Positions 233 through 23,400 of a DNA stretch of 48,393 bases are shown here, one piece after another. Position 1 is the stretch's first letter. Each line of letters opens with the position of its first letter. The translations under genes were made by a program, and so were the position numbers. The notes under the pieces were generated by a model, which saw nothing but the letters and a program-made list of their open reading frames with translations, ran no database searches and was not told the DNA's origin. Source of the stretch: Klebsormidium nitens (taxonomy: Eukaryota > Plantae > Klebsormidiophyceae); the NCBI GenBank assembly GCA_000708835.1, contig DF236974.1, forward strand, positions 1 to 48,393, given 5' to 3'.

Positions 233-1157
233 GCAAAGTGCTAGGGAGAGTCACTACTACGTACTTACCGCCCCACCGCCGCGTTTCAAGGAGCCTGTTT
301 GTATTTTAGAACTTGCGTGTGGCCTTCCGACACTCTTCCCATGCACAAATAGTGACGGCTACCTCTCATTATGTTTCAAATGATACCACATGTTCCTTGG
401 TTGACCGATAGGCTGATGTGTTGGCTTATCTGGAGTGCATCATACTTTAGTATGCTCGCTATAGCAATGAAGCATCTTATTGTGGCCTCTCCCCCTCTAT
501 CATGATTACATTCTACTTCCTATTCACACGGAACGAAAGAGGACGAATCATTCCAATCGCCTTTCGCCTAATGCCCTTCTCATCCACTTTTTAGAGCGCG
601 CACTCTCTCCCTGCATTATGATTGTGCTCGCGTGATCCTTCATGTTTCTCAAAAAACTCCTTCAAAGACAGAGGTCAATATCTATCTATCTATTTGTCTT
701 TCATTACCTTCGTTCCAATTAAGGGGCGCCATTGTAGGCCGCTTCGAGACAGGAGCGATACAAAATGAATTGTGCGCCCGTTTTAGCGTCAAACCTTTCT
801 TTCATCGAACCGCTTATACTCAATTGTCCATTCTCGAACAAACGTTGATCACTGCACGTCGCAACTACGTCACGTTGGTTGTCATGTTGCGCAACCCTTC
901 TTCGAAGACCTCTATGCATCCTCTCCCAAGTTATGGGTCACCCACTCTCTCCTTCGTTCCGCCTTGCGCTTCGAACAACTCTTTAATAATTCGAATTTAT
1001 TTAATTGTTCGATTACGAACAACGTTTGACGACCCGCCGCAGTCACGTCACTCGGGCCGCCTTGTCGCACGACCCCTCTTTAGAGACCTCTACGCATCCT
1101 CTCCCAACTAACGGGTCACCCACTCTCTCCTTCGTACCGCACCGCGCTTCGAACAAC

Positions 1158-1929
1158 NNNNNNNNNNNNNNNNNNNNNNNNNNNNNNNNNNNNNNNNNNN
1201 NNNNNNNNNNNNNNNNNNNNNNNNNNNNNNNNNNNNNNNNNNNNNNNNNNNNNNNNNNNNNNNNNNNNNNNNNNNNNNNNNNNNNNNNNNNNNNNNNNNN
1301 NNNNNNNNNNNNNNNNNNNNNNNNNNNNNNNNNNNNNNNNNNNNNNNNNNNNNNNNNNNNNNNNNNNNNNNNNNNNNNNNNNNNNNNNNNNNNNNNNNNN
1401 NNNNNNNNNNNNNNNNNNNNNNNNNNNNNNNNNNNNNNNNNNNNNNNNNNNNNNNNNNNNNNNNNNNNNNNNNNNNNNNNNNNNNNNNNNNNNNNNNNNN
1501 NNNNNNNNNNNNNNNNNNNNNNNNNNNNNNNNNNNNNNNNNNNNNNNNNNNNNNNNNNNNNNNNNNNNNNNNNNNNNNNNNNNNNNNNNNNNNNNNNNNN
1601 NNNNNNNNNNNNNNNNNNNNNNNNNNNNNNNNNNNNNNNNNNNNNNNNNNNNNNNNNNNNNNNNNNNNNNNNNNNNNNNNNNNNNNNNNNNNNNNNNNNN
1701 NNNNNNNNNNNNNNNNNNNNNNNNNNNNNNNNNNNNNNNNNNNNNNNNNNNNNNNNNNNNNNNNNNNNNNNNNNNNNNNNNNNNNNNNNNNNNNNNNNNN
1801 NNNNNNNNNNNNNNNNNNNNNNNNNNNNNNNNNNNNNNNNNNNNNNNNNNNNNNNNNNNNNNNNNNNNNNNNNNNNNNNNNNNNNNNNNNNNNNNNNNNN
1901 NNNNNNNNNNNNNNNNNNNNNNNNNNNNN
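1158..1929. other. Assembly gap (N run)
   Basis: Ns within the satellite array. Confidence 1.
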
Positions 1930-2478
1930 AACAAAGTTTGACGGCATGCCGCAGTCACGTCACTCGGGCCGCCTGTCGCACGACCCCTCTTTCGAGACCT
2001 CTACGCATCCTCTCCCAACTTACGGGTCACCTACTCCCTCCTTCGTACCGCACCGCGCTTCAAACAACTTGGATAAAAAATCGAGTTTATTTAATGTTTG
2101 GGTTTGAGCAAAGTTTGACGGCACGTCGCAACCACGTCACTCGGCCCGCAATGTCGCACGACCCTTCTCTAGAAACCTTTACGCATCATCTCCCAACTTA
2201 CCGGTCACCCAGTGGGCACCCAGTCTCTCCTTCGTACCGCACCGCGCTTCGAACAACCTTTCCTATTAACCGGTTATCTTTCATTGTCCATTCTAGATCA
2301 AAGTTTGACGGCACGCCGCAACCACGTCATTCGGCCCGTCATGTCGCGCAACCCCTCTTTCGAGACCCCTACGTGTCCTCTCCGCCACTGTTCGGTCACC
2401 CACTCTCTCTTTCTTATTGCACTGCGTTCGAACAACTTGGATAATTAATTGGTTATATTTAATTGTCTCATTTGGAAC

Positions 2479-2895
2479 NNNNNNNNNNNNNNNNNNNNNN
2501 NNNNNNNNNNNNNNNNNNNNNNNNNNNNNNNNNNNNNNNNNNNNNNNNNNNNNNNNNNNNNNNNNNNNNNNNNNNNNNNNNNNNNNNNNNNNNNNNNNNN
2601 NNNNNNNNNNNNNNNNNNNNNNNNNNNNNNNNNNNNNNNNNNNNNNNNNNNNNNNNNNNNNNNNNNNNNNNNNNNNNNNNNNNNNNNNNNNNNNNNNNNN
2701 NNNNNNNNNNNNNNNNNNNNNNNNNNNNNNNNNNNNNNNNNNNNNNNNNNNNNNNNNNNNNNNNNNNNNNNNNNNNNNNNNNNNNNNNNNNNNNNNNNNN
2801 NNNNNNNNNNNNNNNNNNNNNNNNNNNNNNNNNNNNNNNNNNNNNNNNNNNNNNNNNNNNNNNNNNNNNNNNNNNNNNNNNNNNNNNNNNNNNNN
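2479..2895. other. Assembly gap (N run)
   Basis: Ns within the satellite array. Confidence 1.
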
Positions 2896-3981
2896 CATTC
2901 TCTCTGAGTGATGGGATCACCCACATCCTCCATGTATACCGCACCGCGCTTCGAACAAACTTTCCAAAAACCGCTCTTATATTATCTCCCTTCTCAAACG
3001 TAGTTTCACGGCACACGACAGCCTCGTCACTCAAGCACTCGTCTTGTGCGGACCGCTCTACGAGACCTCTACGCCTCTTTCAACTTATATGTCGCTCGTT
3101 CAATCCTTCATATAATGGCCCGTCGTTTGAACAAACATATAAACGATCCGCACTTATTTTATTTTCCATTTTGGATCGAAGTTTCTCGGCATGCAACAAC
3201 CACGTCCCTTAGGCCCTATTCTCGTGCGGACGGGCCTTTTACCGTTCCAAACCTCTATGCATCCTCGTCCAACACATGGTCATCAGAAACCTTGATGGAA
3301 AACTGCACTGATCGCTCGAAACGGTATTTTATTTCATCGCCCGCTTCAGAACAAACTTTGACGACACGCCCCAACTTTGTCATTGAAGCTGCCATGTCGC
3401 ACCACCCCTCTTGCGAAAGACTTCTCTTCACCTATCAACGTATGAAACACTCGTTCTCTTTTACTTTTCGTTCGTTGCTTCATTTTGATGAGCAATATAG
3501 TGACGTCGACATGTATCATGCGTGTTAAAATTACTAATATTGCCAACACCGAAAGACACGCCATCAATTGCTTTCTTGTTTCCCTTAGTAACAAACTGTC
3601 CATTCCAAGCATGTTCATCATTGACGCCCAACAAGATAAACGTATTGCATATCATTCCTTTACTACCATCTATACGAAGTTGTTACTACGACCAGCGTAG
3701 AACATATACGGCAAGATCATTGTGTATTCCTCTGAAACAAAAAAAAATGTCTCCCGATCAATGCACACTAACTAGGCATGGAAAATGCGGCATTGTACGC
3801 TTTGTTAAAGTCGCATGACATATTCATATTTACATGGTGCTCTGTTCAACGTGACCCTTGTCGCCGCTATTCCCTAGCTTCAACCTACGATACCTGCTAA
3901 ACTGCGCTCGGTTCTGCTGGGCGTGAACTCATAGCCACGTTGGCCTTAGTCGCTACATCGGCAACGCAGTCTTTCGGTGCA

Positions 3982-4834
3982 CTAACCCGCCAGCGCCGAA
4001 TGTGTCGCCGGCTTTGACGTGATCCGCATCCACTCCGCCTTGTTGAATGCAACGGCCAACAACAGAGGGTCGTGCCTGCCGAATCCCAAGACCTTGATCA
4101 TAATGGCGTAGATGTGCTTGCACCACGCAAACGCCTTCCGATTGTCCGCCATCATTCTCTTGTACCCCGCGCAATCGCATTCGCACACCCTCTTCAAAAC
4201 CACTTCGTAGAGCTTGTCCGTATCTGCCCCCGCCAACCCCGTTGTCTTGATCATGAACTTCCGCGTTGGGTCTCCCGCAGCGTCCACTCCCATGGCCTCC
4301 GCCACAACGATTCCCTTGTACACGCAACCCCTCACCAGGTTGTCCTTCATTTCCTTCGTAGCCTTCGTCCTGTTCCGCACCGGCCTTCCCTTCACCAACC
4401 CGTCCCCCCTATTCAGCATTTGACGCTTCGCCTCCTTATCTGCCTGTTGCTTCGATCGCACTCCCGCCCCAGAGCCTCGCCGATCCTCTACATTCCCCTC
4501 TGCAGGCCCAATTCCGGCGTTCCGAAAAGTCTTCGGCCCGAGCTTCAAGCTCTTACATGGCAACGCCGCACCTGGATCCTTCAGCTTTGGAAGACTCTCG
4601 TCGTACAAAACCCGTTCCTCCCTTAGCTTCGCCCGATCCCTCGCGGTCAACTCCGTTCCCTCGAACAACGGAAACACATGCGTGTCGGGGTTCGGCAAAA
4701 CCTCCTCTGCTGCTACAGAATAATTCAACCCCCAGCACGTCCTGCTCGCGCATTTTTTCAGTCGCCCGCAGTACGCGACCCTTCTTTGCGGCGCACCATC
4801 CACCTCGAGCGTCCGTGCCACGCGAAGACCCACC
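3982..4834 (-). CDS. Transposase last exon with SWIM zinc finger
   Basis: YEVVLKRVCECDCAGY...WCKHIYAI fits CxC-xn-CxH. Acceptor TGTAG at 4835-4839. Confidence 0.85.
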
Positions 4835-7800
4835 CTACAATAGCCAAAAGAAAAGCTAATTCATAAACTAAGTGGTCTCCTCGTGCCTCTGATTGGAATA
4901 CCCAATCACGATCAAAGGAACGAAACAAACAGATCACCAAAAGCAATGACACGCTGCAACAATGATCAATTCGCAAGTGTGGGTTTCAAAATAAAATTGG
5001 TTCCATTCACTTACTTCATGAGCACCACGTTCCCCAACCGCCCGGCTCTGTTCCTCGCGACCAAGGGTGTGCAACACGATGTGTATCCGTAGCCCGAATG
5101 CTTCGAGCCACAGCAAATGGCCGCATCGTAAGTTTTTAACCGCGCTAATCCCCATTGCGTGGAGAACGCCTTGGCGCCCTGAAAATACTCGTCCGGAACT
5201 CGCTGTTGTCTGAGTCTGGCGCCCGCGGCTTCTCTCCCGTCACGAGCCCTCTCATCATCGCTTTCCACCACCTCCTCCTCCTCCTCCTCTTCCTCCTCCC
5301 CGTGCGCTTCCTCCTCGCTTCTTTCTACCTCCTCCCGTCGTCGGTTGTTTTTCAACTCCTCTTCCTCCCTCTCCAACTCCTCATGCAGCCTTGTAATCTC
5401 ATCCAGGTCCTCCTCGTCCTCGTCTACAAACTCGCTCTCCCGCCTGCTGCCACTCCTCTTCCTCCCCTTGTTCCTTTCTCGCAGCCTCTCGAACTCCTCT
5501 GCTTGTCCCGCTATGTCTTCCTCCGTCAAGTCTCCCATCGACTCCAATACATCCTTGTGAAACCCACTACCACCGACGGCTTCCTCTCCCTCTGGACTTG
5601 ACAACCGCCCCTTTTTCCTCCACCTTTCACTCCTAATGGTATCCGCCCTGTGAGTCCCCTCCTCCTCATCGCTGTCCCTTCCTTCCATCTCAGTCCGCCT
5701 CTCTGCCCCCTCCGCTTCCCGTCTCCTCTTGTTCCGCGTCTCGATCCGGTCCGTCCCGACAGGGTCCGTCTCGTACCCCCCCTCCTGCACCCTCCTTGCA
5801 AATTCTCTCTCTCCTTCTTGTACGCTACCCCCACCTCGCAGGGTTTCCCGCATCTCTTCCACACTTCTTCTCCACTCTCCATTTCGGCGGCGGTTGTCCG
5901 ACAAGGTCGGTCCTCTCGCCGGCTTCGCCAACGCTTCCTTCCTTGCCCTCGCGTCAGACATTTGGAGCAGCATGTTTGCGCCATTGACAAGAACCGCCGC
6001 CGCGATATCCAACTGCATCTTCTTCCCCCCAAGCCCCCTTAGGAACGACGCGTGAGCCGACTCCGCGATGTTAGCCCTCGACTCGAACCCCGTCTCCTCC
6101 TCTGGATCATCCAAACATTCCTCGTCCCGATACGCTACCAAGCGAAAGCCCCTGCACAAACGAAGTGTGTACATAAGAGCACAGCGGATTGTAATTTGCT
6201 ACCGAGCCTCGGCAGCTCGACGCGATTTCAAGGCTGCGCAGCATGTAACCCCCTGTGGTATAGGGAACTTATACGAGTCAACTGGGCTTCCCGTCTTTCT
6301 ACCGAGGCTCGGTAGCAATCACGTTTCCAAGGATTAGTGCATGCTACCGAGCCTCGGTAGCATGCACGTTTTTGGGCTCCATAATGCGCGTCACTAAATT
6401 AATATGGGCATTTAGGGTTTCTGGGTTTTTGGTATTTAGGGTTTTAGGGCTTCAAGGGCTTTGGGATTAAGTGATTTAGGGTTTTAGGGTTTCAGTGCCT
6501 TGGTCATCGCAGAAATTAAGAAACGAACTAGCGCAATTGGCAAGCATAATCATCATTTTCCGGCATATCTTCAAAGCTACGCAATGGGTAAGCCATCGAT
6601 GAGATATTTCTCTTATGTTGGACACAATATCGTATCGAAGTCCGAGTCGCACATACGCTTCCTCCTAACTCATGTACACTCAAATCAGCAAAAAGACCCA
6701 CCGTTGCAGCCAATACTGTAGCCACCCCTCCATCAGCAGCGCGTTCTCCCACGTGCTGCACTTGTCGTTGTAAAACGTCATCAGCTCCTCCGCCTCTAGC
6801 TCCACGTCTCGTTGCGACGCAGCCCCCAATAGGAGATTGCACCTCAGCTTGTGTTCCTCCCTCCACGCTTCCGGTACGTTCTCCCTCTCGTGGCGTCTCC
6901 GACACTCGTGGAAGTGGAACGCGCAGGACACCACCTGTCCTCTCCCTTCCGCCCGGAAATTCTTGAAAGCCTCCTCCGTTGCTCTCACTGCCCCTTCCGC
7001 CGAGTCCAGCATCAGTTTCTTCGGGTTTACGATGTGCGTCTCCACCTTCTCGCTTCCGTTCTTTCCCACGTACCCCTGCGATCCGAGCCGCTTCCATGTC
7101 GCCAAGACCTGCGCCACCGCCTCGTACGATTCCGATTGGATGAACGCCGAGAACACCTCCAACAGCTTGCGCGCGGAGTGATCGTAGACCAGCGCTGTCC
7201 ATCGGTACCACGTTTTCGCAACTTTGCTGCCGTCGCAATACACCATGTTGTTCTGCAGGTCCCCCCTCTTCGACAACCTTCTAGATGTGTCCAACCCCGA
7301 TCCAACCCCCTGCGTCGACATACAAAAGATCATCGGCACCGCCCCGTCCGTCATGCGCGTCTGTCCTGGGAGTTGCACTTCTTGGATTTGATCGAACGGC
7401 AGTGTCCGCATCATCTTGATCAGCCCTTCGTCTCCTCCCCTCAACGCGCCCCCGGCTCGTCCCGCCCTAGCTTGCTCGACCCACTCCTTCAGCCTCCTCG
7501 CGTTTTGAAGGGGGAGCAACTTCTCCACCAACCTGCAATATAACATGTGGTGTGTGTATCAACCAAGCGCGTGAGATCCTACTATAGTCTTCGCCCCTAT
7601 CTTTGTCTTTCCACTCCTCTGCTCTAATCCGACATCAACGATACATGCATTCAACACAAGTTGCACTGCGCTATGAAGATTTTACTCTCTAGTTCAATCC
7701 AAAACAATAATCTGCTTAGCGCAAATTCACTTATGTCTAAAGAAAATGCATCCACTTACTTTTCCGCGCAGTCTTTTCCGGGGTTGTCCTCCATCTCATC

Positions 7801-10405
7801 CAGGATCGCCGCCACCGCTACCGCCGTCTTCGCGCGCGACGGCGTCATCGAACGGTCCATCCTCACCATGCTCATCACCTGCAGCTGCCTCTCANNNNNN
7901 NNNNNNNNNNNNNNCATGATTCTTGACTGACTGAACGCAGGCAGAAACAAGACTCTGGAATCTTGAAGGATGTCCTGAGGGACTTGTCCAACAAGAGAAA
8001 AAAAGTTGTCTTGAGCAAAAAGACAGCAATTTTTCTGAGCTGCGCCATCGCTTGAGAACGCCTGCTCTCATGGTTTCCGCACATGTTAGCTGATCGTGTG
8101 TAGTTATCCTGCCAGCTCTCTGCATATAGGTGGCCAACCATCACACCCCGGCTCGTCCCGCCCTAGCTTGCTCGACCCACTCCTTCAGCCTCCTTGCGTT
8201 TTGAAGGGGGAGCAACTTCTCCACCAACCTGCAATATAACATGTGGTGTGTGTATCAACTTAGCGCGTGAGATCCTACTATAGTGTTCGCCCTTATCTTT
8301 GTCTTGCCACTCCTCCAGTCTAATCCGACATCAACAATTCATGCATTCAACACAAGTTGCACTGCGCTATGAAGATTTCATTCTCTAGTTCAATCCTAAC
8401 AAGAATCTGCTTAGCGCGAATTCACTCATGTCTAAGGAAAATGCATGTGACTTACTTTTCCGCGCAGTCTTTTCCGGGGTTGTCCTCCATCTCATCGAGG
8501 ATCGCTGCCACCGCTACCGCCGTCTTCGCGCGCGACGGCGTCATCGATCGGTCCATCCTCACCATGCTCATCACCTGCAGCTGCCTCTCATCCGCATCGC
8601 TCTTGCTCTCCAGCATCCCCAAATCGTGGTTGTGCTTCCCCATGTAGCAAAACGCTACTTCCTTCTTGTTTCTCACCGTCCACTTTACGGCCTGACACGT
8701 GTCCGACGAATGCTTCGCCTCGTGGTCGCAGTGAAAGCAGATCCATTTTCGCAGCGTCCCCCGCATCTCAAACCCCGTCGAGTTCTCTTTTCCGAATTGC
8801 TTCTTGTACCCGCAATCCCCGTTTACACACGTCATCCCCCCAACGCACTTCCAACTCCTAACAGGCTCCCCGTTTACCGTCTTCATCTTTGTCGTTTGGC
8901 CCCCAATCCAATACCTGCCGTCCCTCAACTTTCTTCCCAAACACACCTCCGCATCCCTGACCAACACCCTCTCCCCATCGATCGCCCCTTCCAGACTTTT
9001 CACTCTCTCCGGTTTCGTTCTCTGTAAAAGTAACTTGAGCGCGTTCGTCACTTGGATCTTCCCGCTCAACAACACTGCATCCGTCACTATCTCCAGTTCT
9101 ACCCTCTCGTTTTGTCCCGCCTCCTCCTTTGCCGCACTCTCTCCACCCTCCGCCCCTGTCACGCTCTGTCCTGCCTTCGCCCCGGTATCTCTCTGGCCCC
9201 CGTCTCCCTCCCACGCTTCTCTCATCTCTCTTACCAAATGCTCGTCTACTCTTCCTTCCCTTCTCATCTCATGTTCATCCCTCGTAAAAATGCCTTTCGC
9301 CCACCGATCAATTCTCTCATTATGCTGGTTCTCTCCTCTGTTCTCTGCTCTCTCAGCTCTCTCTTCTCCCTCTCCAGGTCCGCTACCCTTTCCCTTTACC
9401 CCTACCTCGCTCTGCACCTCCTCGTCTTCTTGTTCGTCCCTCAATCCCTGCTTTTGGGACTTTCTCGCCGCACCCAGGCCCGGTGCCTTCCTACTACCCA
9501 CCACGTAGCAGCTTCTTTCGCCGAATACTCCCGTCGCCGTCGGCCTCGCCCTACACACGCCTGGCTTGCCTACGAGCGAGACACTCGGTCTAACAACCGA
9601 CCCGAAAGAAGACGCCGCTGAATGGAAGCCGGTGGGGGCCGTACGAGCTTACCCGTGCATCGCATTCCTCGCAACGCCTCCTGCTACACCCCTCGCTCCC
9701 CCTCTACCTAACCCCAGACCCCCACGCTGTTGCTTCGGCTGCGCCTCCATCACGTACTTTCCCGCTCCCAACCACCATACGTACTCCATCAGGATCCAAC
9801 GACGGCGACAACCTCACAGGGTCGTCACTTGCGCCCGGCTTCAAGATCAAAGTTCCAACCCAACCTTTGGGAAGGAAATGCGTAGTCACCTCTGCCTTGG
9901 AGACGATGCTGTAGCCTTCGGAGTTCACCATAGACATCAACGGCTCCTTGGTAATCGCGGCAGGGTCGGGGAAAGCCACCATAACCGCATTGGGGACCAG
10001 AACTTCATCAGGCGCCCCTAGCTCTTCGCTCACCTCCTGCTCCACTTCCTTTTCTCTCTTCTCTTTGTCCTCCCCTCCGTTGTCCTCCCCTCTCATCGAA
10101 ACCCCATCTCCCGTGTTACCCTTTGCCGCACTGTTGGAAGTAGTTCCTCCTTCAGCTCCATTGCCAGTCCCTGGAGCCGGCTCTTTGGAATCGGCGGGCG
10201 GCGCCTCCGTCTCCACGCCCTTCACATCCTTCTGATTAGTGTCTTCGAGCGTACCCAGAACACCCGTCGGTGCCGAATGCGCTCCATGATCTTTGGTCGC
10301 GCTCGATGCCCCGACAACCGCAGCTACCGCAGCCACGGGAGCCGAAGTCGCAGGCCGATTCCTGCTTGCAGGTGGCCGGACTCCCAAAGGGGCCAAGGAT
10401 GCCAT
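3982..10405 (-). CDS. MULE/Mutator-family transposase, multi-exon; the 5' part has an unresolved frameshift
   Basis: Exons join in frame at GT-AG sites: ...8456 (or the 7760 copy)/7532-6702/6151-5015/4834-3982. Motifs: VYCDG (D1), LMLDSAEGA (D2), SCAFH (CxxH), RANIAESAH (E), C-terminal SWIM, and an N-terminal Cys/His finger. The start at 10405 is tentative. Confidence 0.85.
5015..6151 (-). CDS. Transposase exon with third catalytic Glu and a long acidic/charged region
   Basis: RANIAESAHASF resembles the MULE TN..ES.H motif. It splices in frame from the preceding exon (LQ-R-GFRLVAYR). Confidence 0.8.
6198..6367. repeat. Palindrome cluster (3 copies of CTACCGAG-N-CTCGGTAG) in a transposase intron
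   Basis: Copies at 6198, 6299 and 6343. The last extends to a perfect 15-bp-arm inverted repeat at 6337-6367. Confidence 0.95.
6411..6493 (+). repeat. Degenerate telomere-like (T)TTTAGGG tract in a transposase intron
   Basis: Five exact TTTAGGG (6411, 6435, 6443, 6475, 6483) with degenerate units between them. Confidence 0.85.
6702..7532 (-). CDS. Transposase core exon (MULE DDE domain)
   Basis: YCDG...LLEVFSAFIQSESYEAVAQVL...PKKLMLDSAEGAVRATEEAF...SCAFHF. Confidence 0.9.
7450..8590. repeat. ~445-bp direct duplication (7450-7894 / 8146-8590) of a transposase exon-intron-exon junction
   Basis: The two copies are near-identical with scattered substitutions. They are separated by a 20-N gap and ~230 bp of unrelated sequence (7915-8145). 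Confidence 0.9.
7895..7914. other. Assembly gap (20 N)
   Basis: Ns between two copies of a ~445-bp duplicated segment. Confidence 1.
8456..9589 (-). CDS. Transposase exon with WRKY/GCM1-like Cys/His zinc-finger region
   Basis: WKCVGGMTCVNGDC...WICFHCDHE...CQAVKW...YMGKHNHD. Donor GTAAGT at 8455. Confidence 0.65.
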
Positions 10406-10778
10406 CTGCAGTATTAAAAAGAATTCCCTTTACGCCCCGGGTGGAACGCTTCATGGAAACGTCCTACTATTCAAACAACATAGCAACGGAGCACTCAGAT
10501 GGATGAAAGACAGCGTCCTACCTTTCGACGATAGTTTCAGAGCTAAACTTCTCTGCAAAAATAATCTTAGACCCCACATGTTCCCCCGTGCAAGTGTCAA
10601 GATTACTACTGAGTCTAGTTCTATGTGTGCACGGAAACAACAAGAACAGATTCAAAACTGCTGGCACAATCAATGATGAACTAAGTGTACGATTGAAAAA
10701 TATTCTCAATATGCTATGCTCCCAAGCGCCGGTATGGATAAGCAAGGAGATACTTGGATCAGAATTCCCTATAGCTAA

Positions 10779-12474
10779 CTACCGAGTCTAGGTGGCCAGG
10801 GTCCAACGGCGAACAGTCACGGAACGGATTTGTAAACGATTAAATACGCTACTATGCTACCGAGCCTCGGTACAGCGTGACCCCGCAGGTTATCAAGCAG
10901 CTCCACCATCATTACAAGGTCTTCACATACCGAGCCTCGGTAGCAGAATATTTTTACCGGCTCCAACAGCTGACCATTACCGCTAACGGTTACCGAGCAA
11001 CTAGAGTCTTGTGAAAAGGAACCATTATCGGGACCATTATCGCTAGCTCATATTTCAAAAAACCCCCGGAAAAGTCTGTTTCTACCGAGCCTCGGTAGAA
11101 ACCGACCGCAAGGGACCGGCACAAAATATAGCTACAATGTTAAAAAACGGGACGGGGTTGACCGTTACCGCTTACCGTTACTGCAGGATATCGCCGTTTG
11201 CTTGCGCCCCTTATCCGTCCTCACAATGCCCCTTTACAATTAACTTGGATTATGACGGGACAACCAACGACCACCCGGCGGCGTCGCTTGTGACAAGACC
11301 GCGGGAAATCTAAAAAGATTGACGGGACAAGGATCTGAGTCTATACACTTGGTATTGACTATGATATTTGTATAATCTTTAGGCTTCCTCCAATGTTGGC
11401 CCTCTCCCTGTGGGCGCGGCACAATTTACTGAAAATTACACTCCGATATGGAGCATTCTGATTGGTTGTTTGGATGTGGGCATCCACCACGGCGTTGGAT
11501 ATTAACCATAGGTTTGGATTTGGTAATCATTGGACCATCCCTTAGATCCACCCATTCCCATTATCGTCAATCTGCGTGGCCAACCGATGGCCGTCCGATA
11601 GGGTCGGGTTATCAGATGACACGCCCTACGGCCCACAGAATCGCGATATTTATCGTTACACACGCTTTTAACACTGCTCATATAACAAATACAGTCGGTA
11701 CTTCATGGATACCACTGTAACGCTTTCCCCCGGCCGCATCGTTTCCCGCAATCGGACTGGAAATTGGTATTTGTATTAGTAAAGGTAGTGCCCGGTAGAA
11801 ACGATGGCTACCGAGATCTCGGTAGCATTCGTGCAGAACTTCGGAAGCTTCATTTCTTTTTAGTGAGCAACGGAGCGGATTTTCTTGGGCGCCCAAGAAA
11901 AAAGTCAACGCAAGTCAACGCTGGAGGGACGGTGCGAATCAAGGTAAAAAGGCCTTTTTTTCTTTTGTTTTCTCAGAGTCGAAACACTTCAACTCTGCGA
12001 CGTTTTCTAGAAATCCCTGTGTTTTTCTGGGTTTTTGGTTGCCTGGTGTTGCTACCGAGGCTCGGCAGCTCACGCTTGTTCAAGTCACGCTGATTCGTTG
12101 CTACCGAGCCTCGGCAGCTCACGCTTGTTTGAGTCACGCTGGTTCGTTCCTACCGAGCCTCGGTAGCATTGCCCTGTAGTAGCCTGCAGCGGCCTTTTTC
12201 TTCAGGAAGCTACCGAGCCTCGGTAGCTTCTGCTGTTTTTAGTTGACTATCCTGGTACCTTATTCTTACGCTAGTCGATAGCAACCGAGGCTCGGTACCC
12301 AACGATATCTTGAGTTGTTACTTCTCGCGAGATCCTCCATTGCTGCCGAGCCTCGGTAGCATTGCCCCATTGCAACAGCCGCAGGCAGATTCGCTGATAA
12401 TCTACCGAGCCTCGTCAGCAGACGCTGTTTCTTACCTTGGCCGTACGGTGGCCAGTCGCCACCGAGCCTCGGTA
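10779..12474. repeat. Central palindrome field between the divergent genes (~13 copies)
   Basis: Copies near 10779, 10856, 10928, 11081, 11807, 12051, 12100, 12150, 12209, 12281, 12342, 12402 and 12458. Confidence 0.95.
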
Positions 12475-13920
12475 ATTTTGCTTCGTTGCAGCTGCTGTTG
12501 GTCGTGTTCCGTTGAACTGAACCAAGTGCGATATTTTGCTGCTCCTTGCAGACGATTCTCAGATGATCGGAAGTCTTGGGAAAGCCGTCCTTTCTAAACA
12601 AAGTGGGACGTGGGAGTGGGGCGAAAAGAATAGTCTTGACAGTAGGTCTGAGAGCACCGTCGAAATGGGAGGGGCAAAGGGAGGGGCAAAGGGAGGTGCA
12701 AAGGGAGATGCAAAGGGAAAGGGTGGGCTTAAGAGGGTGGCAACTGCGGAGGCCGAGGGCAGTGGCAAGGCGGCTAAGAAGCAGAAGCCCGAGGCCGCTG
12801 GTGGGGCTGGACCAGTAGTGCCAAAAGCCAAGAGGAGCGGAGCCGTGAAGAAGGACGGGACGCCTTCGAACGGTGGGGAGGAGGAGTTGACGGAAGTGCC
12901 GCCCGCGCACGTCAAGGTCACCACCCCGGGAAAGATGAAGGCGGGTGCAAGCACTCTGGGGATTCGGGCTGCGCAGGGGGTCCTTTCGAAGCTGGAAAAG
13001 ACCTACCTGCAGACCACCCTCCAGGAGCAGATCAAAGATTTCGTCCCGGATGATCTGAGAAAGATCAAGCCTGATGGGATAGTGACCATCCCCATTGGGT
13101 ATCTCTCGACCGAGGACGAGATGATCGGAGGGGAGCTGATGTCCTTCAACCCGCGTCAGCTGAACGCAGACGGAGTGGCGCGGATCCGGCAGAGGTTCCG
13201 TATCAATGGGTTCGACACGACGAGGTCCATCTTGACGGGGGTCGTGTCGGTGAGTAGGTTGGTTTTGTTTGTAGAAGGAATGGTGGAATGAGAGGGTGAT
13301 ATTGTGATGGATATTTTGCAAGACTTTGGTGTTTATTGGCGACCATTGCTTGTAAGGAAAGATGCACAAGTTGCGAGAGTTGTAGGATATGGATGCTTGT
13401 GATTCGAATGACAACGCACCTTCAAACGGAACCAATCTGACTCATCATGGGGATCGAATAATGTTTTTCTGTTAACATTGCAGTACAACGGGATGACCTT
13501 CCCGATGGACAAGAAAATGCGGGATAGCTGGGACGAGGTGGAAAGAGAGAACATCAAGGATTGGAAGGAGTATTTGGAGAAGACGAAGGGGACAAGCCCT
13601 CTGAGTGCGTGGACGCTGAAGCACATCGCAGGAGAGGGGAAGTCGTGGGGGAACAAAGTGAACGTGTCCGACGGCAAGCACAGGTGAGTATAGATTGGAG
13701 ATGATATGAGAGAGTATAATAGGAGTATGTCTGTCCAAAAGGTGGCTCGTTTCTCATTGTAGGTAGTTGCTACGGAGCATATGTAGGAATGCTGAGGAGA
13801 GGATTGGTGGGTTTTGTTGCTTTTGTCACTGCTGATTTTTTATATAGCTGACAGGTTTTGTTAAGGATGATGGACAGCTGTGCTCTGCTGGTAGGCTGAA
13901 TAGCACGCATAGTGGCACGT

Positions 13921-14086
13921 TGCTACCGAGCCTCGGTATAATAGCATAGAGCAAGCAAAATGACGCCGTTGCTACCGAGCCTTGGTAGAATAGCATAGAG
14001 CAAGCAAAATGACGCCGCTGCTACCGAGCCTCGGTAGAATAGCATAGAGCAAGCAAAATGACGCCGTTGCTACAGAGCCCCGGTAG
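13921..14086. repeat. 49-bp tandem repeat (~3.4 units), each unit carrying the palindrome; intronic
   Basis: Palindromes start at 13922, 13971, 14020 and 14069. Confidence 0.95.
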
Positions 14087-14817
14087 GATAGCCTACAACA
14101 GAATACTATATGTAGTATTGGTTATCTTGCGGTGTGGGATTCTCAAATAGTTTGTTCTTTCCCATTTTCAGGGTGGAAGCGGTGAGGGAGGAACAGAGAG
14201 CGAATTTCCACTCCCTGAAGCTGGACCCCCAAGGCAAGAGGCACCCGATGGTAAAGGTGCAACTGCTGGACGCGTCATCGGACATGATGGGGAAGCTGCT
14301 GGCGTCCTGCAACGCAATCAACGAGCAAACCTCGCAGGGCATCCAGAAGCAAACCATCCCGCTCAAGATCATGACTGTCAGGAGCTGTTGAGGAATCTCA
14401 CGGCAGACCAGGTGGACGAGCGGTTCCCGCTCAAGGTGAGTATAATTAGGATAATACAAATGTAGAGACTGTGAAATTGTTGCGCTGAAACTGGTTCACA
14501 GGCAATTTGCGTAGGTGTTGTTGATGCTGCTGCAAGGATGCAAATGCTGGATCCATGGAGAGGCTACGAAGGAGTTCACATTGCGAGGTACTCATAAACT
14601 GGTCTCAAACGTTCTGCTAACATCGAATATGATATAATGCAGACGCTGGAGACGATGTCGACAATGGCGGGCAACAAGCTGAACCTAGAGTACGTTTTCT
14701 ACAAGCCCCGTGGGGTCGGACAAAGTGGAGAAGATCGCCAAGCTCCAAGTAGCCATGATGGTGGACCCCGTCTTCGAGTAAGTTTGCTTCTACTTTTGTG
14801 ACGTTGATTCCGTGCTT

Positions 14818-15166
14818 GCTACCGAGGCTCGGTAGCAAGCAGAAAAGCTCTTCCAAACAGTTGACCATAGTTCAGTCTACTTCTTCAACGACGGCCATTC
14901 TAGACAAGAACCTGCTTGCTACCGAGTCTTGGTAGCGAGCAGATCTTTAAGACCACAGCAAAGCATGTGTAGGGGCTCGTAAAAGGAATGATAGTCTTGG
15001 TTTCTCGATTGCTACCGATCCTCGGTAGCGGGACTCGTTATAAGGGGTATATAGTGCATCCAACCCTTCGAGACAGAGGGGACTCCGCTTCAGATCAGTC
15101 CGTTGTTACCGAGCCTCGGTGGGGTGCATCCAGACAAATAGTACTTTGCTACCGAGGATCGGCAGC
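14818..15166. repeat. Intronic palindrome cluster (5 copies)
   Basis: Copies near 14818, 14918, 15011, 15107 and 15148. Confidence 0.9.
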
Positions 15167-17213
15167 ATGCTGTATTTGAGAATCTCGTGAAGTATCTGAT
15201 AGAGAGATTTGGCAGTAGCTAATGTGATTTTTCTGCGCTTACAGGGACGACGTGGCGGGCTGGCAAACGGCGGACAACCCCCCCGACTCCACGCCCTTCG
15301 CTTCGCTGTGCAACACGAAGCAAAGCGAGATGCGGAGGCTCTGAACGGCAGCCAACCACGTGGCGGGATCGGGGTACGAGAAGGCGCTAGAAGCCATCAC
15401 CCAGGACACGGAGATCGCAGAGGGCTTGGGGAAGGAGGACCTGTACACGCTGGTGGGTACGGGCTTGAGTGAAGAATGGGTGGAGGAAGCGGTGTGGAGA
15501 ATCTTTGTGAAGAAACCGGCGCAAGCGGAAGAAGAGGGGTTCGGGAGGTCGTTGGAGAAGATACGGCAGATGTGCAAGGGGTTGGGGTACGCGTACAAGG
15601 TCATGAGGGAGGGGCTGCAGTGGCTGCGGAGGCTGAAGATCCTGAAGGATGAGCCGGTGTCGAAGGACGGGTCCCCAGACATCTCGTGGAACTTCGCCTC
15701 AGCGGATGTGAAGGCGTTGTTCCGGGTGAAGAAGTCGGTGGAGTACCCGGAATGGGTCATGAGGCTGGCGTTCAGCAAAACGAAGAAGGGGGCGCACTTG
15801 GCGCGGTACATGTTCGGGCAGGGGCAAGAGTGCAAGGAGAAGGCGAGCGCCAAGACAAAAGAAGAGCAAGGACGTGGAGGAGGCGGGCAAGAGGTCGGTC
15901 TGCCAGCACCTACAGTGGCTATTCTCGCCGTCGGAGGGTTGGACGGACGCGCAGAGCCTGTACTCGGGGGTGCCGGAGGCGCTGGACCTGCGTAAAAACG
16001 TGCTAGAGGCGATTGCGACTGGGGCTGTGTTCGGTGGAAACTGGGAGGTTGAATCAGCAGCGGCGACGGTGTACAATCTCGAGGACGAAAAGAAGCTCGG
16101 GGTGCCGTTGGAGAGGGACTGTGGGGGGGAAGTTCCGGAGGGACTGATCGAGCTTGGGAAGGAAACGGGGCGGGAATACATCACGAGGAAGGTCAGAGCG
16201 TACAAATTGAACGTTCAGATTGGAGTGGAGGAGGTCGCAGAGGAGGGTCGGGAGGGAGAGGGGAAGCAAAGCCTGTCCATCAGCTCGACGGAGGTCTACA
16301 ACGTGGTGGAGGAGTCAAACTCCTTCGTTTTGCCGTCGGTAGCGAAGCTGGTGGAGGGATTGGAGTACCTGTGGCTGCTGGACGACGGAGACTGGGAGTC
16401 GAAGAAGAAGGGGGTGGACATGGTGTGGTTCAACGTGCCGCTGCCTCGGTGCGTGCTTACCGACGGGGAGGCGGCAAAGTATGACCCGCGGCAGCAGCGG
16501 CCGTGGGAGACCGACGAGGTGCTGGGGGCGCTGGAGCTAGCGAAGAAGCTCCTAACGCCTGCGGGGGTGCTGGTGGTGGTGGCACCTGTGGGGTTCCCGG
16601 AGTCGGCGTTGGACGGGACGAGTTACACTGGCCTGGTCACCGCCGTGAGATCGACTGTCACGTTGGTGATGGGTTTCAAGAAGTCGAAAGTGAGAATGTC
16701 CTATAGTTGAATAATAGTTAGCCGTTCTTGTTGATCAATTGAGAGTTGGATGTTTGTGGTTAACACCAGAGGACAAATGAGCACAACTTATTCCTAGAGT
16801 AGTGTGTTCTGCTGGTTTCCTACGGCATGGCGAAATAGGGCTATTGGAAAGATAGCAATTGAACGTTGCTTCCGACTTGCTTGCAGGACACGACCAAGCA
16901 CGTGTACGGCTGCCAAGGCAACACGTTCAACGTCTACTACGTGACGCTGGCGGCGTCGGACCTGACGTCCATGGTGAAGGGAAGTGCGTGGAGGGACACT
17001 CTTGAAGGGGTACCTTTCCACGGAATCTTGAAGAAGCACGGCTCGTACAAGGTACGGTCCCGTTTCTGCGTGATACAATGTTTGTCTTCCCTTTTGGAAT
17101 GTAAGTGTCATTGGCCTGAGAGTGTCTTGGGTTTTAGGGTCATTAGTTCGAATCTTGAAGGAGTGACTGTATTTGGGAACGGCATGGTTGTGCGCACTCC
17201 AATAGCGGTCCTC

Positions 17214-17427
17214 CTACCGAGGCCCGGTAGGAAACGGATCTTGTGTAGTCCGTCTGATAGGGATCGTCCTACCAGCTACCGAGGCTCGGTATAAACGGAT
17301 CAGGCGAGACCAAACAGCAGTGCTGGAAGGAGGCTCGAAACTGAGGCATTGCTACCGAGACTCGGTAGCAATCTGCAAAGAATGTTGTTGCTCTCTTTTA
17401 CTCGTCATTGCTACCGAGGCTCGGTAG
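17214..17427. repeat. Intronic palindrome cluster (4 copies)
   Basis: Copies near 17214, 17275, 17351 and 17410. Confidence 0.9.
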
Positions 17428-18552
17428 TTAAGCCTCCTTGGACTGAGCTGTGAATGATGTTGCCTGTTATGCTTTAACCGGAAAGTTGATTATTACCTCT
17501 CTGCCGTGTCATGTTCAGCCCTACTCTTTCCTTGAGTGGGAGGCCTCTGGCAAGGGGCTGTCGACCAAGATGGTGACGAGCCTGCTCGGGGGGGTGCCGC
17601 CGCGCGGTGGGACTGCCGTCGTGCTCAACGCCAAGGGGGGCAGGGAGGTGTCGGCCATATCAAAGGCCGGCTTAAAAGTCCTTGCGACGTACTCCGAAGC
17701 AAAGGAGACGTTCCCTGGAATGCTCGAGGATTCGAAGACGGGGAAGAAGTGGGGGGGTACCGACGGGTCAGCAGCAGAAGACCAGGTGGAGAAGGGGCCG
17801 ATAGAAAAGGCGCCGACGGAGACGGCAGGAGCAGGCCAGTCGAGGGGGAAGGAGAGGACCGCGGAGTATGCGGAGTCGGTTGCCGGAGACGCGGGCAGGG
17901 ATAAGTCTGCGGAGGATGTGGATGAGGAGAGGGCCGAGATCGAGGATGAGCTTGCGGAGGCCGCGGCGGAGGGTGAGGAGGGCGAGTCGGAACCTGCAGA
18001 GGGTGAGGATGAGGAGGGCGGGGAGGAGCCTGCAGAGGGTGAGGAGGGGACAACAAAGGAGAAGGGCGAGGAGGGTGCAGGAGACAAGGAAGGGGAGAAG
18101 GCCGCGGGGACGGCGCAGCCGAAGGCAGCTGGGGGCTCCGGAGAGGCAGGCGAGTCAATCGCCGGCAGCTCGGACCCCTACACTCTAGAATTGAAGCGTT
18201 TGGACGCTGAGAAGGGAGAGTAAGGTTGATTGTAGAATACATGGTTGTGGAGTAGGGCAGATGATGTGCTGGGTAAAGAGGGTGTGATAGGGGATGGATC
18301 AGAAGACATGGAAGGAATAGTTTTTTGGCAGGGCGTCATGAATGTCATGACATGGATGAACGTGGACATTGTTGGAGCTCAAATATTGTGGCTCACGTAA
18401 TTTGAATGAGATACTGTCATTCAGTGTCGCACTCCAAATGCACATATATCGTGCGCTTCTTCACGGTTAGTTAATATAACGGGCCAAATTATGTATGTGC
18501 ATACTTTGAAGCACTAGTATTGAGTGCTTTGTATGGCCTTCGCTTTGTGCAG

Positions 18553-19187: not shown

Positions 19188-19544
19188 AGTCGCCTTGGAA
19201 AATACTAGACAGGGGAATGCGTAACAGAATGTGACAAACATTGTAAGCACACACATTACCGTTTTTGGAATGATGTTCAACCATCAGAAACTATGATCTT
19301 GCTTCATTTGCGATGAATGGAATGCACGGGGTCTATAACCATCATGAAATGGGTGTATGAACATGAACGGGCTAACGGTCAAGTCTCGAACAAGTACATA
19401 CGAGTGAGGAATACCAAGGAAATACCAAGGAAACTGTTTAGCGCGGTACTGAACCGGCTAAACGGCCTTTGTTGAATATTGAAAGGACACTCAACGGTGC
19501 GGTTAACCTTGGGAGCATAGGGAAGCGGGGGCCGGGCCCGAAAG

Positions 19545-19570
19545 CCCTAAAACCCTGAAACCCTAAAAAA
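19545..19570 (-). repeat. Short telomere-like tract CCCTAAAA-CCCTGAAA-CCCTAAAA
   Basis: Three TTTTAGGG-like units on the minus strand next to the right AT-rich tract. Confidence 0.75.
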
Positions 19571-20422: not shown

Positions 20423-23400
20423 ATGGCGGAAAGCAAAGAAAAGCACGAGAGCGGCTTGCTCGCCCCTACATCGTACGACAAAGAGCCCCCTAGGGACCCG
20501 TCCCTGATCATAAACTCCAAGGTACGTTTTTGTCTGCCAGTGACCAATTGTGTTTCAAATCTGTTTGAGCTTCGTTGGTGGTGATATGCACCTGATTCTG
20601 CAAGGCCGTTAAGGACAATGCAGTATGAAATCTTCGTGTTCCTTAGAAGCCTGTCAGTGAATCACACAAGATGGAGAAGATGTGGTATTAGGGTTCACTT
20701 GGAACCCTAATGTGGGATCACCTTTGCTGAACGTGTTTGACAAGTTTCTAAAGCTCATGCAGAATGCGGCACGCCAGAGATCCATTTGAACCAGCAAACC
20801 TGGTAGTCCCAAAAACAGATTCTGGTTGCTTGCAGACCCCATTCAATGCAGAGCCGCCCGTGGGGGCCCTGGCGCAGTCATTTATCACACCTACCCCGCA
20901 CTTCTACAAGAGAAACCACGGGCCCATTCCCATCTTGGAAAATGAGGAGGAGTGAGCAGCTGCATGCCTCTTTGGAAACTCCATCGCTGGTCCCATTCTG
21001 CTCTGCCAACTGCCTGCAGCTCGCAGAAGGCCTCGTTGATGCTAAATAATGATGGACGGTTGCCAAGTGCAGCTCAGCTCCCAATGGTCTCACCATGAGC
21101 TGTTTTTCTTGGGGAAGGCAGCGTGTTTGCGCTGGAATCTGACTATTCCACAGCTGGAATCTCAATGCCTGCGGTGCTCGGCGTCACAGCTGGTTCGAAG
21201 CAACACAATGCAGAGCATGGGGATGTTGCCGTCAAGACAGGTGGCCGGCGTGTGGCCCACGAGTCTGCACAAGATAGTCCATCATTCTTGTTGTTAAACC
21301 AACCCCGCTCTACGGCGCAGGTATCGGCTCACGATTGATGGCCTGCTGCCGCACCCAATCAAGCTGACCCTCGCACAGCTCAAAAGCTTGGGGAAGGAAG
21401 TCGTGGTGGCTTCGCTCATGGTAAGTAACTTTTCTGTTGGCGGTATCCGTTGGCTGGCACTCTAAATTGGCTATACTCCCAGTCACAAGATTGCTACCGA
21501 GCATCTCGAAGCTTTGCGGTGGGCAGGCTCGACTGGCAACCCGGACTTGCGGCTTGAATCTGCCGTTGCAAGGCACTTTCGGCCCAGACTAAAAGATTCC
21601 TCACTTGGAACTGCGACATAGGTACCCCTGAACTTACTTGGGCACACTTTGTGAGTCGCATAGATTTGCTGCCGGCTCTCCTGCCCAAATGAAGTTCGAC
21701 TGGAGTCGATATCACCTGTGCTGAACAGGTATCTTTTGTTTTTCCCTCCTGATACAAATCCGTTTCCTGTTACTGCAGTGTGCAGGGAACCGCCGCACCG
21801 AGATGAGCAGACTGAAGGCTGTGCGAGGGGTTGGGTGGGGCCCAGCGGCGGTTGGGAACGCTGTATGGGGTGGAGTGCCTCTGAGCCGGGTCCTGCAGCT
21901 GGCAGGGGTCTCGCAGGGGGCTTGGGAGACGCACTCGGGGGGCCGCCACGTGGAGTTCGTCAGCGTGGACAGGTGTAAAGTGAGGGACTCGTCGACTATC
22001 GCCTCGCTTCATCTGAACCCTTCGGTCCTTTCATCGATGGTTAGTATGGTGTTGGAAAGCAGTCCAACAAATACTTGCGGATGAAACAGCTTGACCACCC
22101 CCGGGCGGCCTGACGTTCTCTGGATTTGGTGAGTAACGACGATGCTAGGCATGCGAGCATTGCAGCGGCACTTAATCAACCTAGGCCTCGGCCCGGTGTT
22201 GCATGACGTCTTTCTTACTGCACCTCTCTCTCCCACTTCTCATCACCCCCCCTCCCCCTTCCTCCGATCCCATCGTTCACCACACCGGAGCTTGTCTTTC
22301 TTTTCTGGTTCCTCCACCCTTCAAGCTCACACTCTCCCCTTCCTTTTCCCCTTTCTCACTTGGGCTCTCCCCCCCTCTTCGCAGGAAGAGAAGGGTGGCC
22401 CGTACCGTGCGTCCATCCCCCTGCACATGGCCACGTGTCCCGACCAGGAGGTGCTGCTCGCTTACGAGATGAACGGGGAGCCTTTGCCTCGCGACCACGG
22501 TTGCCCGCTGCGCGCGGTGGTGCCAGGTGTCATCGGGGCGCGCTCCGTCAAGTGGCTGGACAGGATCAACATCCTGGCGGATGAGTGCCAGGTAGGCAGG
22601 GAAATGTGGCTTGACGCGTTGTGCATTGGGCAAATCCCCCACCAAAAAGGGCTGGTTTTCCGATTTCGCGGTTCACTTAGCGCGGTGTCATGCATCGTTC
22701 CAGCAAGAGGGGTTTGGGAGGCTGTTCTTTTTATGACCCTGCGTAGAGGCAACTTCAGGCTCTGGAGGAACTTTCCAAGAGTCTACGGACTGGGATGCAT
22801 GTTCCAGAGGAGTCTTGCAGACTCTCCTCCTTCCAGTCTACAGCCGCCAGAAAGCGAGCACCCGCCTTCAAGTCCAGTCAATGAACAAACGAATCAGGTA
22901 AAATGGACACAAGCCTCACCGAAATCGTTGCGCATGGCTGGCAGGGCTTCTTCCAGCAGCTCGACTACAAGATGTTCCCGCCCTGGGTCGACTGGGACAA
23001 CGTCAACTGGAGCTCGCGCAGTTCCATCCAGGACTTTCCCGTTCAGGTGCGTCTGCATGTGGTTGTTTGTGCGAAGACTCACGCTGCTGCAAGCTGGTCT
23101 CGGTGTTGTGCTTCTTCTCGACGTGGGTGCTGAGGAGCTCGCTTTCTTAGCGCTGCCACAGCTTGTGAAAGGATTCTTCCGAGGGCATTGCCTTGGTAAG
23201 GTGGTTTTCGGGCTTCGAGTCCCAGTTCCCCGGGTTTGGATGATCCCCGTAGTGATCTATAGGCTCAGTGAGACGCCCGGTGATTTTTGTGGCTTGAGCC
23301 CGCAGTTAAACTCCTGCCACGTGTCTTGTGTACAGCTGGCGGTGTGCTCGCCGACCTCCAAAGACAGCATCGCGCCCGGTAGCAAGGTAAGTTGAAAAAG

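Follow-up and report, generated by a model that had tools for sequence, protein, structure and literature searches.

A probable, highly divergent ParB/Srx-like domain encoded across two conserved introns in the accessory gene of a putative Mutator-like element of Klebsormidium

A stretch of 48,393 nucleotides from the alga Klebsormidium nitens (contig DF236974.1; the whole stretch is hereafter called the window) contains a long gene, transcribed divergently from a transposase-like gene, whose 5' part is divided into three exons. A first-pass annotation of this DNA, made from the letters alone, had proposed that the three exons together encode a ParB/Srx-like domain within a plant-lineage transposon. 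As a whole, the data are best explained by a very divergent N-terminal domain of ParB/Srx type, encoded by these exons within the accessory gene of a Mutator-like element that inhabits Klebsormidium, an explanation that a modest balance of probability favours. In bacteria, ParB proteins act as clamps with a CTP switch and tag chromosomes and plasmids at the palindromic parS sites; to our knowledge eukaryotic uses of the ParB fold are barely explored outside sulfiredoxin.

By direct reading of positions 12900-14600, GT-AG borders were identified at both introns between the exons ending at 13249, at 13484-13683 and at 14172-14435 (Table 1). The splice borders 13249/13484 and 13683/14172 proposed by the first-pass annotation were thereby reproduced, and the related loci described below gave the same result. 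The 3' end of exon 1 at 13249 reads TCG/GTGAGT (the slash marks the splice border), and its start is presumably the first in-frame ATG, at 12563, as judged from the homologues P0002 and P0004. The peptide of exon 1 has an N-terminus rich in K and G and a helical stretch, after which comes IVTIPIGYL..FNPRQLNADGVARIRQRFRINGFDTTRSILTGVVS, putatively the first half of a ParB-like domain. Exon 2 encodes a family-specific insertion of about 50 residues (WDEVE..KDW..), followed by ..KVNVSDGKH and the two first bases of an Arg codon. The peptide of exon 3 begins with the third base of this Arg and continues through VEAVREEQ.., LDP..KRHPMVKVQLL and ..LLASCNAINEQ.. to IMTVR... These translations match the peptide given earlier (FNPRQLNADGVARIRQRFRINGF.., ..VNVSDGKH, the split R, and VEAVREE..VKVQLL..LLASCNAINE). 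The Arg codon of DGKHR is split AG/G by intron 2, and its formation across the splice junction, as claimed before, was recognized as the same phase-2 split in all ten loci that reach intron 2. The accompanying claim that no single open reading frame (ORF) shows the motif held for the motif with its following helix and failed for the motif itself: the read-through ORF 13478-13687 has ..VSDGKHR at its end, since intron 2 begins with a G that can serve as the third base of the same AGG. Intron 2 also contains a 49-nt tandem repeat of 3.6 copies, with a 17-nt palindrome in each copy.

A word search with exon 1 matched five proteins, and an exhaustive HMMER search of 1.84 billion protein representatives with a profile of the conserved part of exon 1 gave 11 matches. 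All the homologue proteins found are exon-sized fragments ending at the same splice donor, and neither search yielded a full-length gene model, a member without intron 1 or a ParB. Contigs were fetched for ten of the homologue proteins. The border between exon 1 and intron 1 is common to every family member seen (11 loci, and 11 of the 11 matches of the exhaustive search), while introns 1 and 2 stand at the same codon and in the same phase in all 10 of the fetched loci that reach them. Protein identity to the window copy ranges from 88% down to 26-32%. Loss of intron 2, which would give a contiguous ORF, was found in no family member, the intron being kept in 10 of 10 loci reaching it. At the split Arg, the donors of intron 2 read AG/GTGAGT (locus L002), AG/GTGCGT (L001), AG/GTGGGC (L005), AG/GTATAC (L006), AG/GCAAGT (L008, the one GC donor), AG/GTAAGT (L111) and AG/GTGAGC (L110), and the third base of the Arg codon, from the acceptor side, is G or A. 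In a blastn comparison of the window with L001, the exons were aligned and the introns were skipped. The ratio of nonsynonymous to synonymous substitution (dN/dS), estimated for four of the closer copies, was 0.23-0.34 in exon 1, 0.15-0.24 in exon 2 and 0.16-0.18 in exon 3. Since the introns are conserved, blastn skips them and dN/dS lies at 0.15-0.34, the structure goes well beyond chance, the exon model can be relied upon and selection on the peptide is purifying. The view that these introns have been long resident in eukaryotes gains support from the retention of their positions down to about 26-30% protein identity.

The window copy itself differs from L001 by the loss of 1 nt at 14382/14383 in exon 3, by an in-frame stop (TGA) at 15342-15344 and by 1 inserted nt near 15861; with one stop codon and two frameshifts, this copy is dead. 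Exon 3 of L018 is also frameshifted.

The similarity of exon 1 to ParB was estimated with two reference profiles, one of 13 canonical ParB N-domains (F plasmid, phages and viral contigs) and the other of 84 phage fusions of ParB_N with N6_N4_Mtase, of which both domains were confirmed by Pfam in four seed proteins. By hhalign, a 12-sequence profile of exon 1 placed NPRQ..RFRINGF onto NPRK..SI.EFGY in both ParB profiles, with P values of 0.0014 and 0.002, while the controls (reversed ParB profiles, the methyltransferase domain and unrelated exons) gave P values of 0.11-0.67. The observed score was reached by 0 of 150 and 1 of 150 column shuffles, the latter with the canonical ParB profile. When the alignment was inspected by eye, the most conserved residues of the family fell on the ParB landmarks in both order and spacing, from IP.G through N(P/S)R and.NG(F/Y) to (D/E)G.HR or DELRR followed by ..A, then PM.K...LL and hN(D/E). 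In the same inspection the motif was (D/E)G(K/R/A)HR in most clades, and its final R was invariant, always split by intron 2 and followed by x-x-A. We infer a ParB fold, with predicted nucleotide (CTP) binding. A ParB-like domain would then be interrupted by three family-specific insertions: one forms a hairpin between the IPxG strand and NPR, another of about 50 residues precedes the DGxHR strand, and the third, of about 15 residues, comes after the next helix. In the most divergent clade (L110 10481-10665), SDELRR/ARAIPKA stands in place of DGKHR and VEAV, and is nearer to the bacterial GERRxRAA.

The accessory gene is arranged head to head with the transposase-like gene, and the two are always paired in copies. 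Along the transposase candidate, the motifs listed in Table 1 were recognized by translation, and the order of a WRKY-like finger, D, D, CxxH, N.aES and a SWIM-like motif is that of Mutator-like transposases. We infer a Mutator-like element because of this motif order, which Pfam did not confirm; the SWIM match in Pfam was weak (E 0.49). The candidate (3985-10429, minus strand), unrecognized by the transposase models of Pfam in the window and in four related loci, may be a member of a very divergent transposase lineage. The word transposon is used here for a multi-copy, diverged and decaying gene pair, which recurs on many unrelated contigs, with several diverged clades within single samples. 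The mobile-element setting claimed by the first-pass annotation is well supported by these many diverged and decayed copies, paired as they are with the transposase-like gene. The assignment to the plant lineage was also right, because Klebsormidium is a streptophyte (Streptophyta): the neighbouring sulfite oxidase exon, in ORF 22142-23392, is 99% identical to a Klebsormidium nitens protein, with land-plant proteins coming next at 66-81%. The element's relatives stem from metagenomes and one flowering-plant leaf sequencing run, an origin that fits an aero-terrestrial alga.

A 17-nt palindrome, CTACCGAG-S-CTCGGTAG, was found 27 times in the window with two or fewer mismatches, as compared with an expected number of 0.01. 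All 27 palindromes are located inside the element, within 6199-17427, and none falls in its coding parts. Clade-specific variants of the palindrome occupy the same places in nine of 12 loci (L001, L004, L005, L006, L007, L008, L018, L110 and L111), and take the forms TACCGAC-N-GTCGGTA, TGCCGAC-N-GTCGGCA and ACCGCA-N-TGCGGT. Such arrays would look like sites for a dimeric, element-encoded protein, and are a candidate ligand of the accessory protein.

On the plus strand, a positive GC skew and a chain of open frames extend from about 12.5 to 19.2 kb, and the three exons are best explained as the 5' part of a long accessory gene with at least seven exons, covering about 12.5-19.2 kb of the window. 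The large middle exon, which in the window is broken, has 492 codons in the intact relative P0015. The AlphaFold2 (AF2) model of P0015 gave a pTM of 0.56, with residues 50-330 helical at a pLDDT of 70-90 and a C-terminal part of low confidence. For this exon, neither a Pfam match nor a fold match in PDB was obtained (the best Foldseek hit against PDB, E 0.37, was to designed helical repeats). The middle exon forms a small family of its own (15252-16689; P0015-P0021) with a conserved VW(F/L)N.PLP..LLT.AGV.VVV.P segment. An N6/N4 methyltransferase at 15.8-16.7 kb was considered and is unsupported: no match to PF01555 or PF02086 was found in Pfam, P0015-P0021 carry no precomputed Pfam domain, hhalign to the phage N6_N4 MTase profile gave P values of only 0.1-0.6, with 0.1-0.5 for the VWFNVPLP..VVVAPVG region, and the conserved NxPLP differs from the (D/N/S)PP(Y/F) motif. 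The open frame at 17447..18220 is probably another exon of the accessory gene, as judged from its strand, GC skew and position. The last exon belongs to Peptidase_C48 (PF02902), with an E value of 2e-7 and a Pfam score of 31.5 bits against the gathering cut-off of 20.7, and contains the His, Asp, Gln and Cys of C48 in order (NIHW..YYDPF..QHQ..TECG).

Table 1. Location of the putative transposase gene, the palindrome arrays, the exons and introns of the accessory gene, and the neighbouring host gene in the window
Feature	Position	Strand	Evidence or remarks
Putative Mutator-like transposase, multi-exon, divergently transcribed	3985..10429	-	Motif order; colinear with L001
SWIM-like CxCxnCxH, transposase candidate	3985-4860	-	Translation
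RANIAESAHASFL (RANIAESAH; N.aES), transposase candidate	5014-6198	-	Translation
DDE-like motifs VYCDGS.. and LMLDSAEG.., and CxxH motif SCAFHFHE	6683-7558	-	Translation
WRKY/GCM1-like zinc finger (C..C..HNH), transposase candidate	8455-9648	-	Translation
Array of eight 17-nt palindromes, 49-72 nt apart	12052..12475	.	Between the two genes, in their common intergenic region, immediately 5' of exon 1
Further palindrome clusters	6199-6360, 10857-11098, 13923-14086, 14819-15165, 17214-17427		Four in the intron 2 tandem repeat
Exon 1, accessory gene	12563..13249	+	ORF and GTGAGT donor; homologues P0001-P0014 all end at the donor
Intron 1 (GT..AG)	13250..13483	+	3' end ..TTGCAG; position kept in all family members
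Exon 2	13484..13683	+	3' end CAC AG/GTGAGT; kept in 10 loci
Intron 2, phase 2	13684..14171	+	3' end ..TTTTCAG
Exon 3	14172..14435	+	3' end CTCAAG/GTGAGT; first base G completes AGG
Probable further exon, conserved with L001	14608..14839	+	blastn, 81% identity to L001 7475-7712
Large middle exon	15252..16689	+	VDMVWFNVPLP..LLTPAGVLVVVAP after an all-alpha part; broken in the window by TGA and 1-nt insertion
Open frame with acidic low-complexity tail	17447..18220	+	No Pfam family
Last exon, Ulp1/SENP-type cysteine protease core and stop codon	18798..19187	+	NIHWAALVI..YYDPFG..QHQTSLTECGLH
Host sulfite oxidase gene	20752-23392	+	Oxidored_molyb, Pfam 3e-24

The domain shares with the ParB N-terminal domain of bacteria and phages (PF02195, including the phage fusions of ParB_N and N6_N4_Mtase) the order of landmarks: an (I/V)P(I/L) strand, NPR, a helix ending in ..G(F/Y), a strand with a GxxR-type Arg followed by ..A, and a later conserved Asn. 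It differs from the bacterial and phage domains in the three insertions to be assumed, in having DGKHR or DELRR in place of GERR or GHxR, and in scoring below all thresholds of the hidden Markov models (HMMs); it is also eukaryotic, divided by two conserved introns, and accompanied by neither a recognizable helix-turn-helix (HTH) nor a partner ParA. ULP1-like (C48) genes are carried by plant Mutator-like and CACTA elements (Kaonashi or KI-MULEs). As in Kaonashi and KI-MULEs, the Ulp1-type protease domain of the window element, a putative Mutator-like element of the plant lineage, resides in a second gene, whereas here the protease forms the C-terminus of a much longer protein that starts with a ParB-like module, and the host is a charophyte alga.

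Among transposons of other algae, PAG3, carried by red-algal Plavaka/EnSpm, Chondrus Mutator and Zisupton elements, combines a weak similarity to ParB with a 2-oxoglutarate (2OG) oxygenase (Petroll et al. 2025, bioRxiv 10.1101/2025.02.11.637652). The best HHpred match of its ParB-like domain had an E value of 0.29 and InterPro gave nothing; tandem inverted repeats lie beside the gene, and the protein has been proposed to bind its own transposon (bioRxiv 10.1101/2025.02.11.637652). PAG3, compared here with the window gene from its published description, likewise belongs as an accessory gene to a giant DNA transposon of algae, and has a weak ParB-like N-terminal domain and adjoining inverted-repeat arrays; it differs in carrying a 2OG-dependent oxygenase instead of a C48 protease, while the window host is a streptophyte green alga and the window transposase candidate is Mutator-like. 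In Ectocarpus, the element Sola1-1_Ec32 encodes a 1104-aa protein with a ParB-like part and a DNA methyltransferase, on the strand opposite to the Sola1 transposase (Genome Biol 2025, PMC12477816), and a family of chlorophytes and chytrids has a ParB-type HTH fused to Dam (Iyer et al. 2016, PMC4738411). The Ectocarpus protein resembles the product of the window gene as a long accessory protein with a ParB-like module, whose gene and that of the transposase lie on opposite strands of a giant transposon of algae, and which has been proposed to bind and modify its own element. Unlike both the Ectocarpus protein and the Iyer family, the window gene has no detectable methyltransferase, and the Iyer family has been described with the ParB HTH and not with the N-terminal domain as in the window gene. 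ParB-like accessory proteins with repeat arrays are thus already described in red and brown algal transposons, a class into which the window gene fits by its layout and repeats. It departs from this class in the effector (a C48 protease, with neither methyltransferase nor oxygenase detectable), the host (a streptophyte) and the type of transposase.

A number of results weigh against the ParB assignment and its setting. No ParB match at E values up to 10 was obtained in Pfam, NCBIfam, PHROGs and PADLOC with single exons of several members; these scans of HMM libraries were run exon by exon, a procedure by which a domain split three ways is disadvantaged. Searches of PDB profiles with the exon alignments gave low-complexity or designed-protein noise only, the exhaustive HMMER search with the exon 1 profile detected just the 11 family fragments and no ParB relative, and AF2 prediction of exon 1 alone, from the exon 1 alignment, was uninformative (pLDDT 49). 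The profile match of exon 1 spans just 21-24 columns; exons 2 and 3 gave no profile-profile signal against ParB (hhalign, P 0.25-0.9); one clade reads SDELRR and so lacks the G and H of DGKHR, leaving the split Arg as the only invariant residue of the motif; and no HTH was identified downstream by Pfam, AF2 or PDB fold search. As to the element, no MULE, FAR1 or DBD_Tnp_Mut match was found by Pfam in the window, L001, L006, L018 and L110. Between the flanks of the gene pair, terminal inverted repeats (TIRs) and target-site duplications were not found, the only match being one of 17 nt at chance level, and the search on the left side is hampered by N runs at 1158-1929 and 2479-2895. The palindromes could equally be sites of the transposase.

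The negative results of all the HMM and PDB searches and of the exhaustive search, the silence of exons 2 and 3 and the variation within DGKHR speak for an alternative in which the exons are real and conserved while the fold of the domain is peculiar to the lineage and has no relation to ParB/Srx; NPR, DGxHR and N, as short and common motifs, would then resemble ParB by chance. In its favour are also the ParB topology, which fits only when three large insertions are assumed, and the one shuffle among 150 of the canonical ParB profile that reached the observed score. We consider such a fold possible and yet rather doubtful, for two ParB profiles of different construction both match exon 1, in one and the same expected register and with better values than any control, the conserved residues follow the ParB landmarks in order and spacing, and an independent literature describes ParB-like accessory proteins beside inverted-repeat arrays in other algal transposons. 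As judged from sequence comparison, the ParB assignment is probably right by a small degree, and is unproven. What stands of the first-pass claim of a ParB/Srx domain is the profile-profile match of exon 1 in the expected register; a match to a family HMM was not obtained, and DGxHR and the downstream Asn are a reading of motifs only. Even a domain of the ParB/Srx type might act as an enzyme (nuclease, NTPase or sulfiredoxin-like phosphotransferase) and not as a site-specific clamp, with the palindromes as unrelated transposase or promoter elements. That DGxHR-type ParB domains of phage proteins are commonly annotated as nucleases, that no HTH was detected downstream, and that subterminal repeat arrays are the usual transposase-binding sites in DNA transposons all agree with an enzyme; the location of the palindromes, however, is central in the element, by the gene start and inside introns and not at the ends, and the same arrangement has been noted for the red-algal PAG3; we consider an enzymatic role very unlikely. 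Least probable by far is that the gene belongs to the host, either domesticated or never mobile, and only happens to neighbour a transposase. Purifying selection between copies and the lack of detected TIRs or target-site duplications would be in keeping with it, but the gene pair turns up again on numerous unrelated contigs, single samples contain several diverged clades of it, stop codons or frameshifts have accumulated in copies (the window and L018), and the window copy adjoins an ordinary host gene.

If the ParB assignment holds, the accessory protein may recognize the element's own 17-nt palindrome arrays, as ParB does parS. This putative binding would bring the C48 protease and the activity of the middle domain to the chromatin of the element, where their delivery might counter silencing or help transposition. 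In its most complete form, the predicted biological role would be that of a transposon-run ParB/parS-like system, in which a ParB-fold protein loads on co-diversifying palindromes, perhaps as an NTP-dependent clamp, spreads, and delivers a SUMO protease that strips repressive SUMO-dependent chromatin; this complete scheme we regard as unlikely. If true, it would amount to an anti-silencing device that the element aims at itself, in the lineage from which the land plants arose. The proposal from algal genomes that giant transposons carry ParB-like accessory proteins binding to their own arrays rests on weak matches. To this proposal the present locus adds a streptophyte example with a SUMO-type protease as effector, introns conserved across deep clades, and a clear candidate ligand in the form of clade-specific palindrome arrays confined to the element. 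Klebsormidium is culturable, so that tests of binding and anti-silencing are practical. Should the ParB reading fail, the family would still be that of a conserved transposon protein with a striking system of cis-repeats.

Several other features were observed in the window, for which an Rfam scan gave no family. The transposase-like gene contains a 696-nt tandem duplication (7450-8590), 94-98% identical, with a 20-nt N run at 7895-7914 inside it. Assembly artefacts are possible around this N run and around those at 1158-1929 and 2479-2895, the latter two being located in the AT-rich left part. The region 839-3436 is low in GC (28-37%) and contains direct repeats of 88-123 nt at a spacing of 178-190 nt, which might belong to the subterminal part of the element or form an independent repeat. 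An intron of the transposase-like gene contains, at 6403-6506, a degenerate telomere repeat of the plant type, (TTTAGGG)n, and a short (CCCTAAA)n-like run in the opposite orientation lies at 19540-19568, just past the Ulp1 stop codon, beyond which some 120 nt are very rich in AT; these telomere-like runs may be element ends, insertion sites or promoter elements of the telo-box type. Other mobile-element genes were found near the related copies at L006 10993-12189 (minus strand) and at L111 9768-10601 (minus strand) and 7148-7783 (plus strand). They encode an integrase (rve) that carries a PHD finger and a transposase of the Harbinger type (DDE_Tnp_4), and there is also an ORF with a SAM domain, which suggests repeat-rich neighbourhoods or nested insertions.

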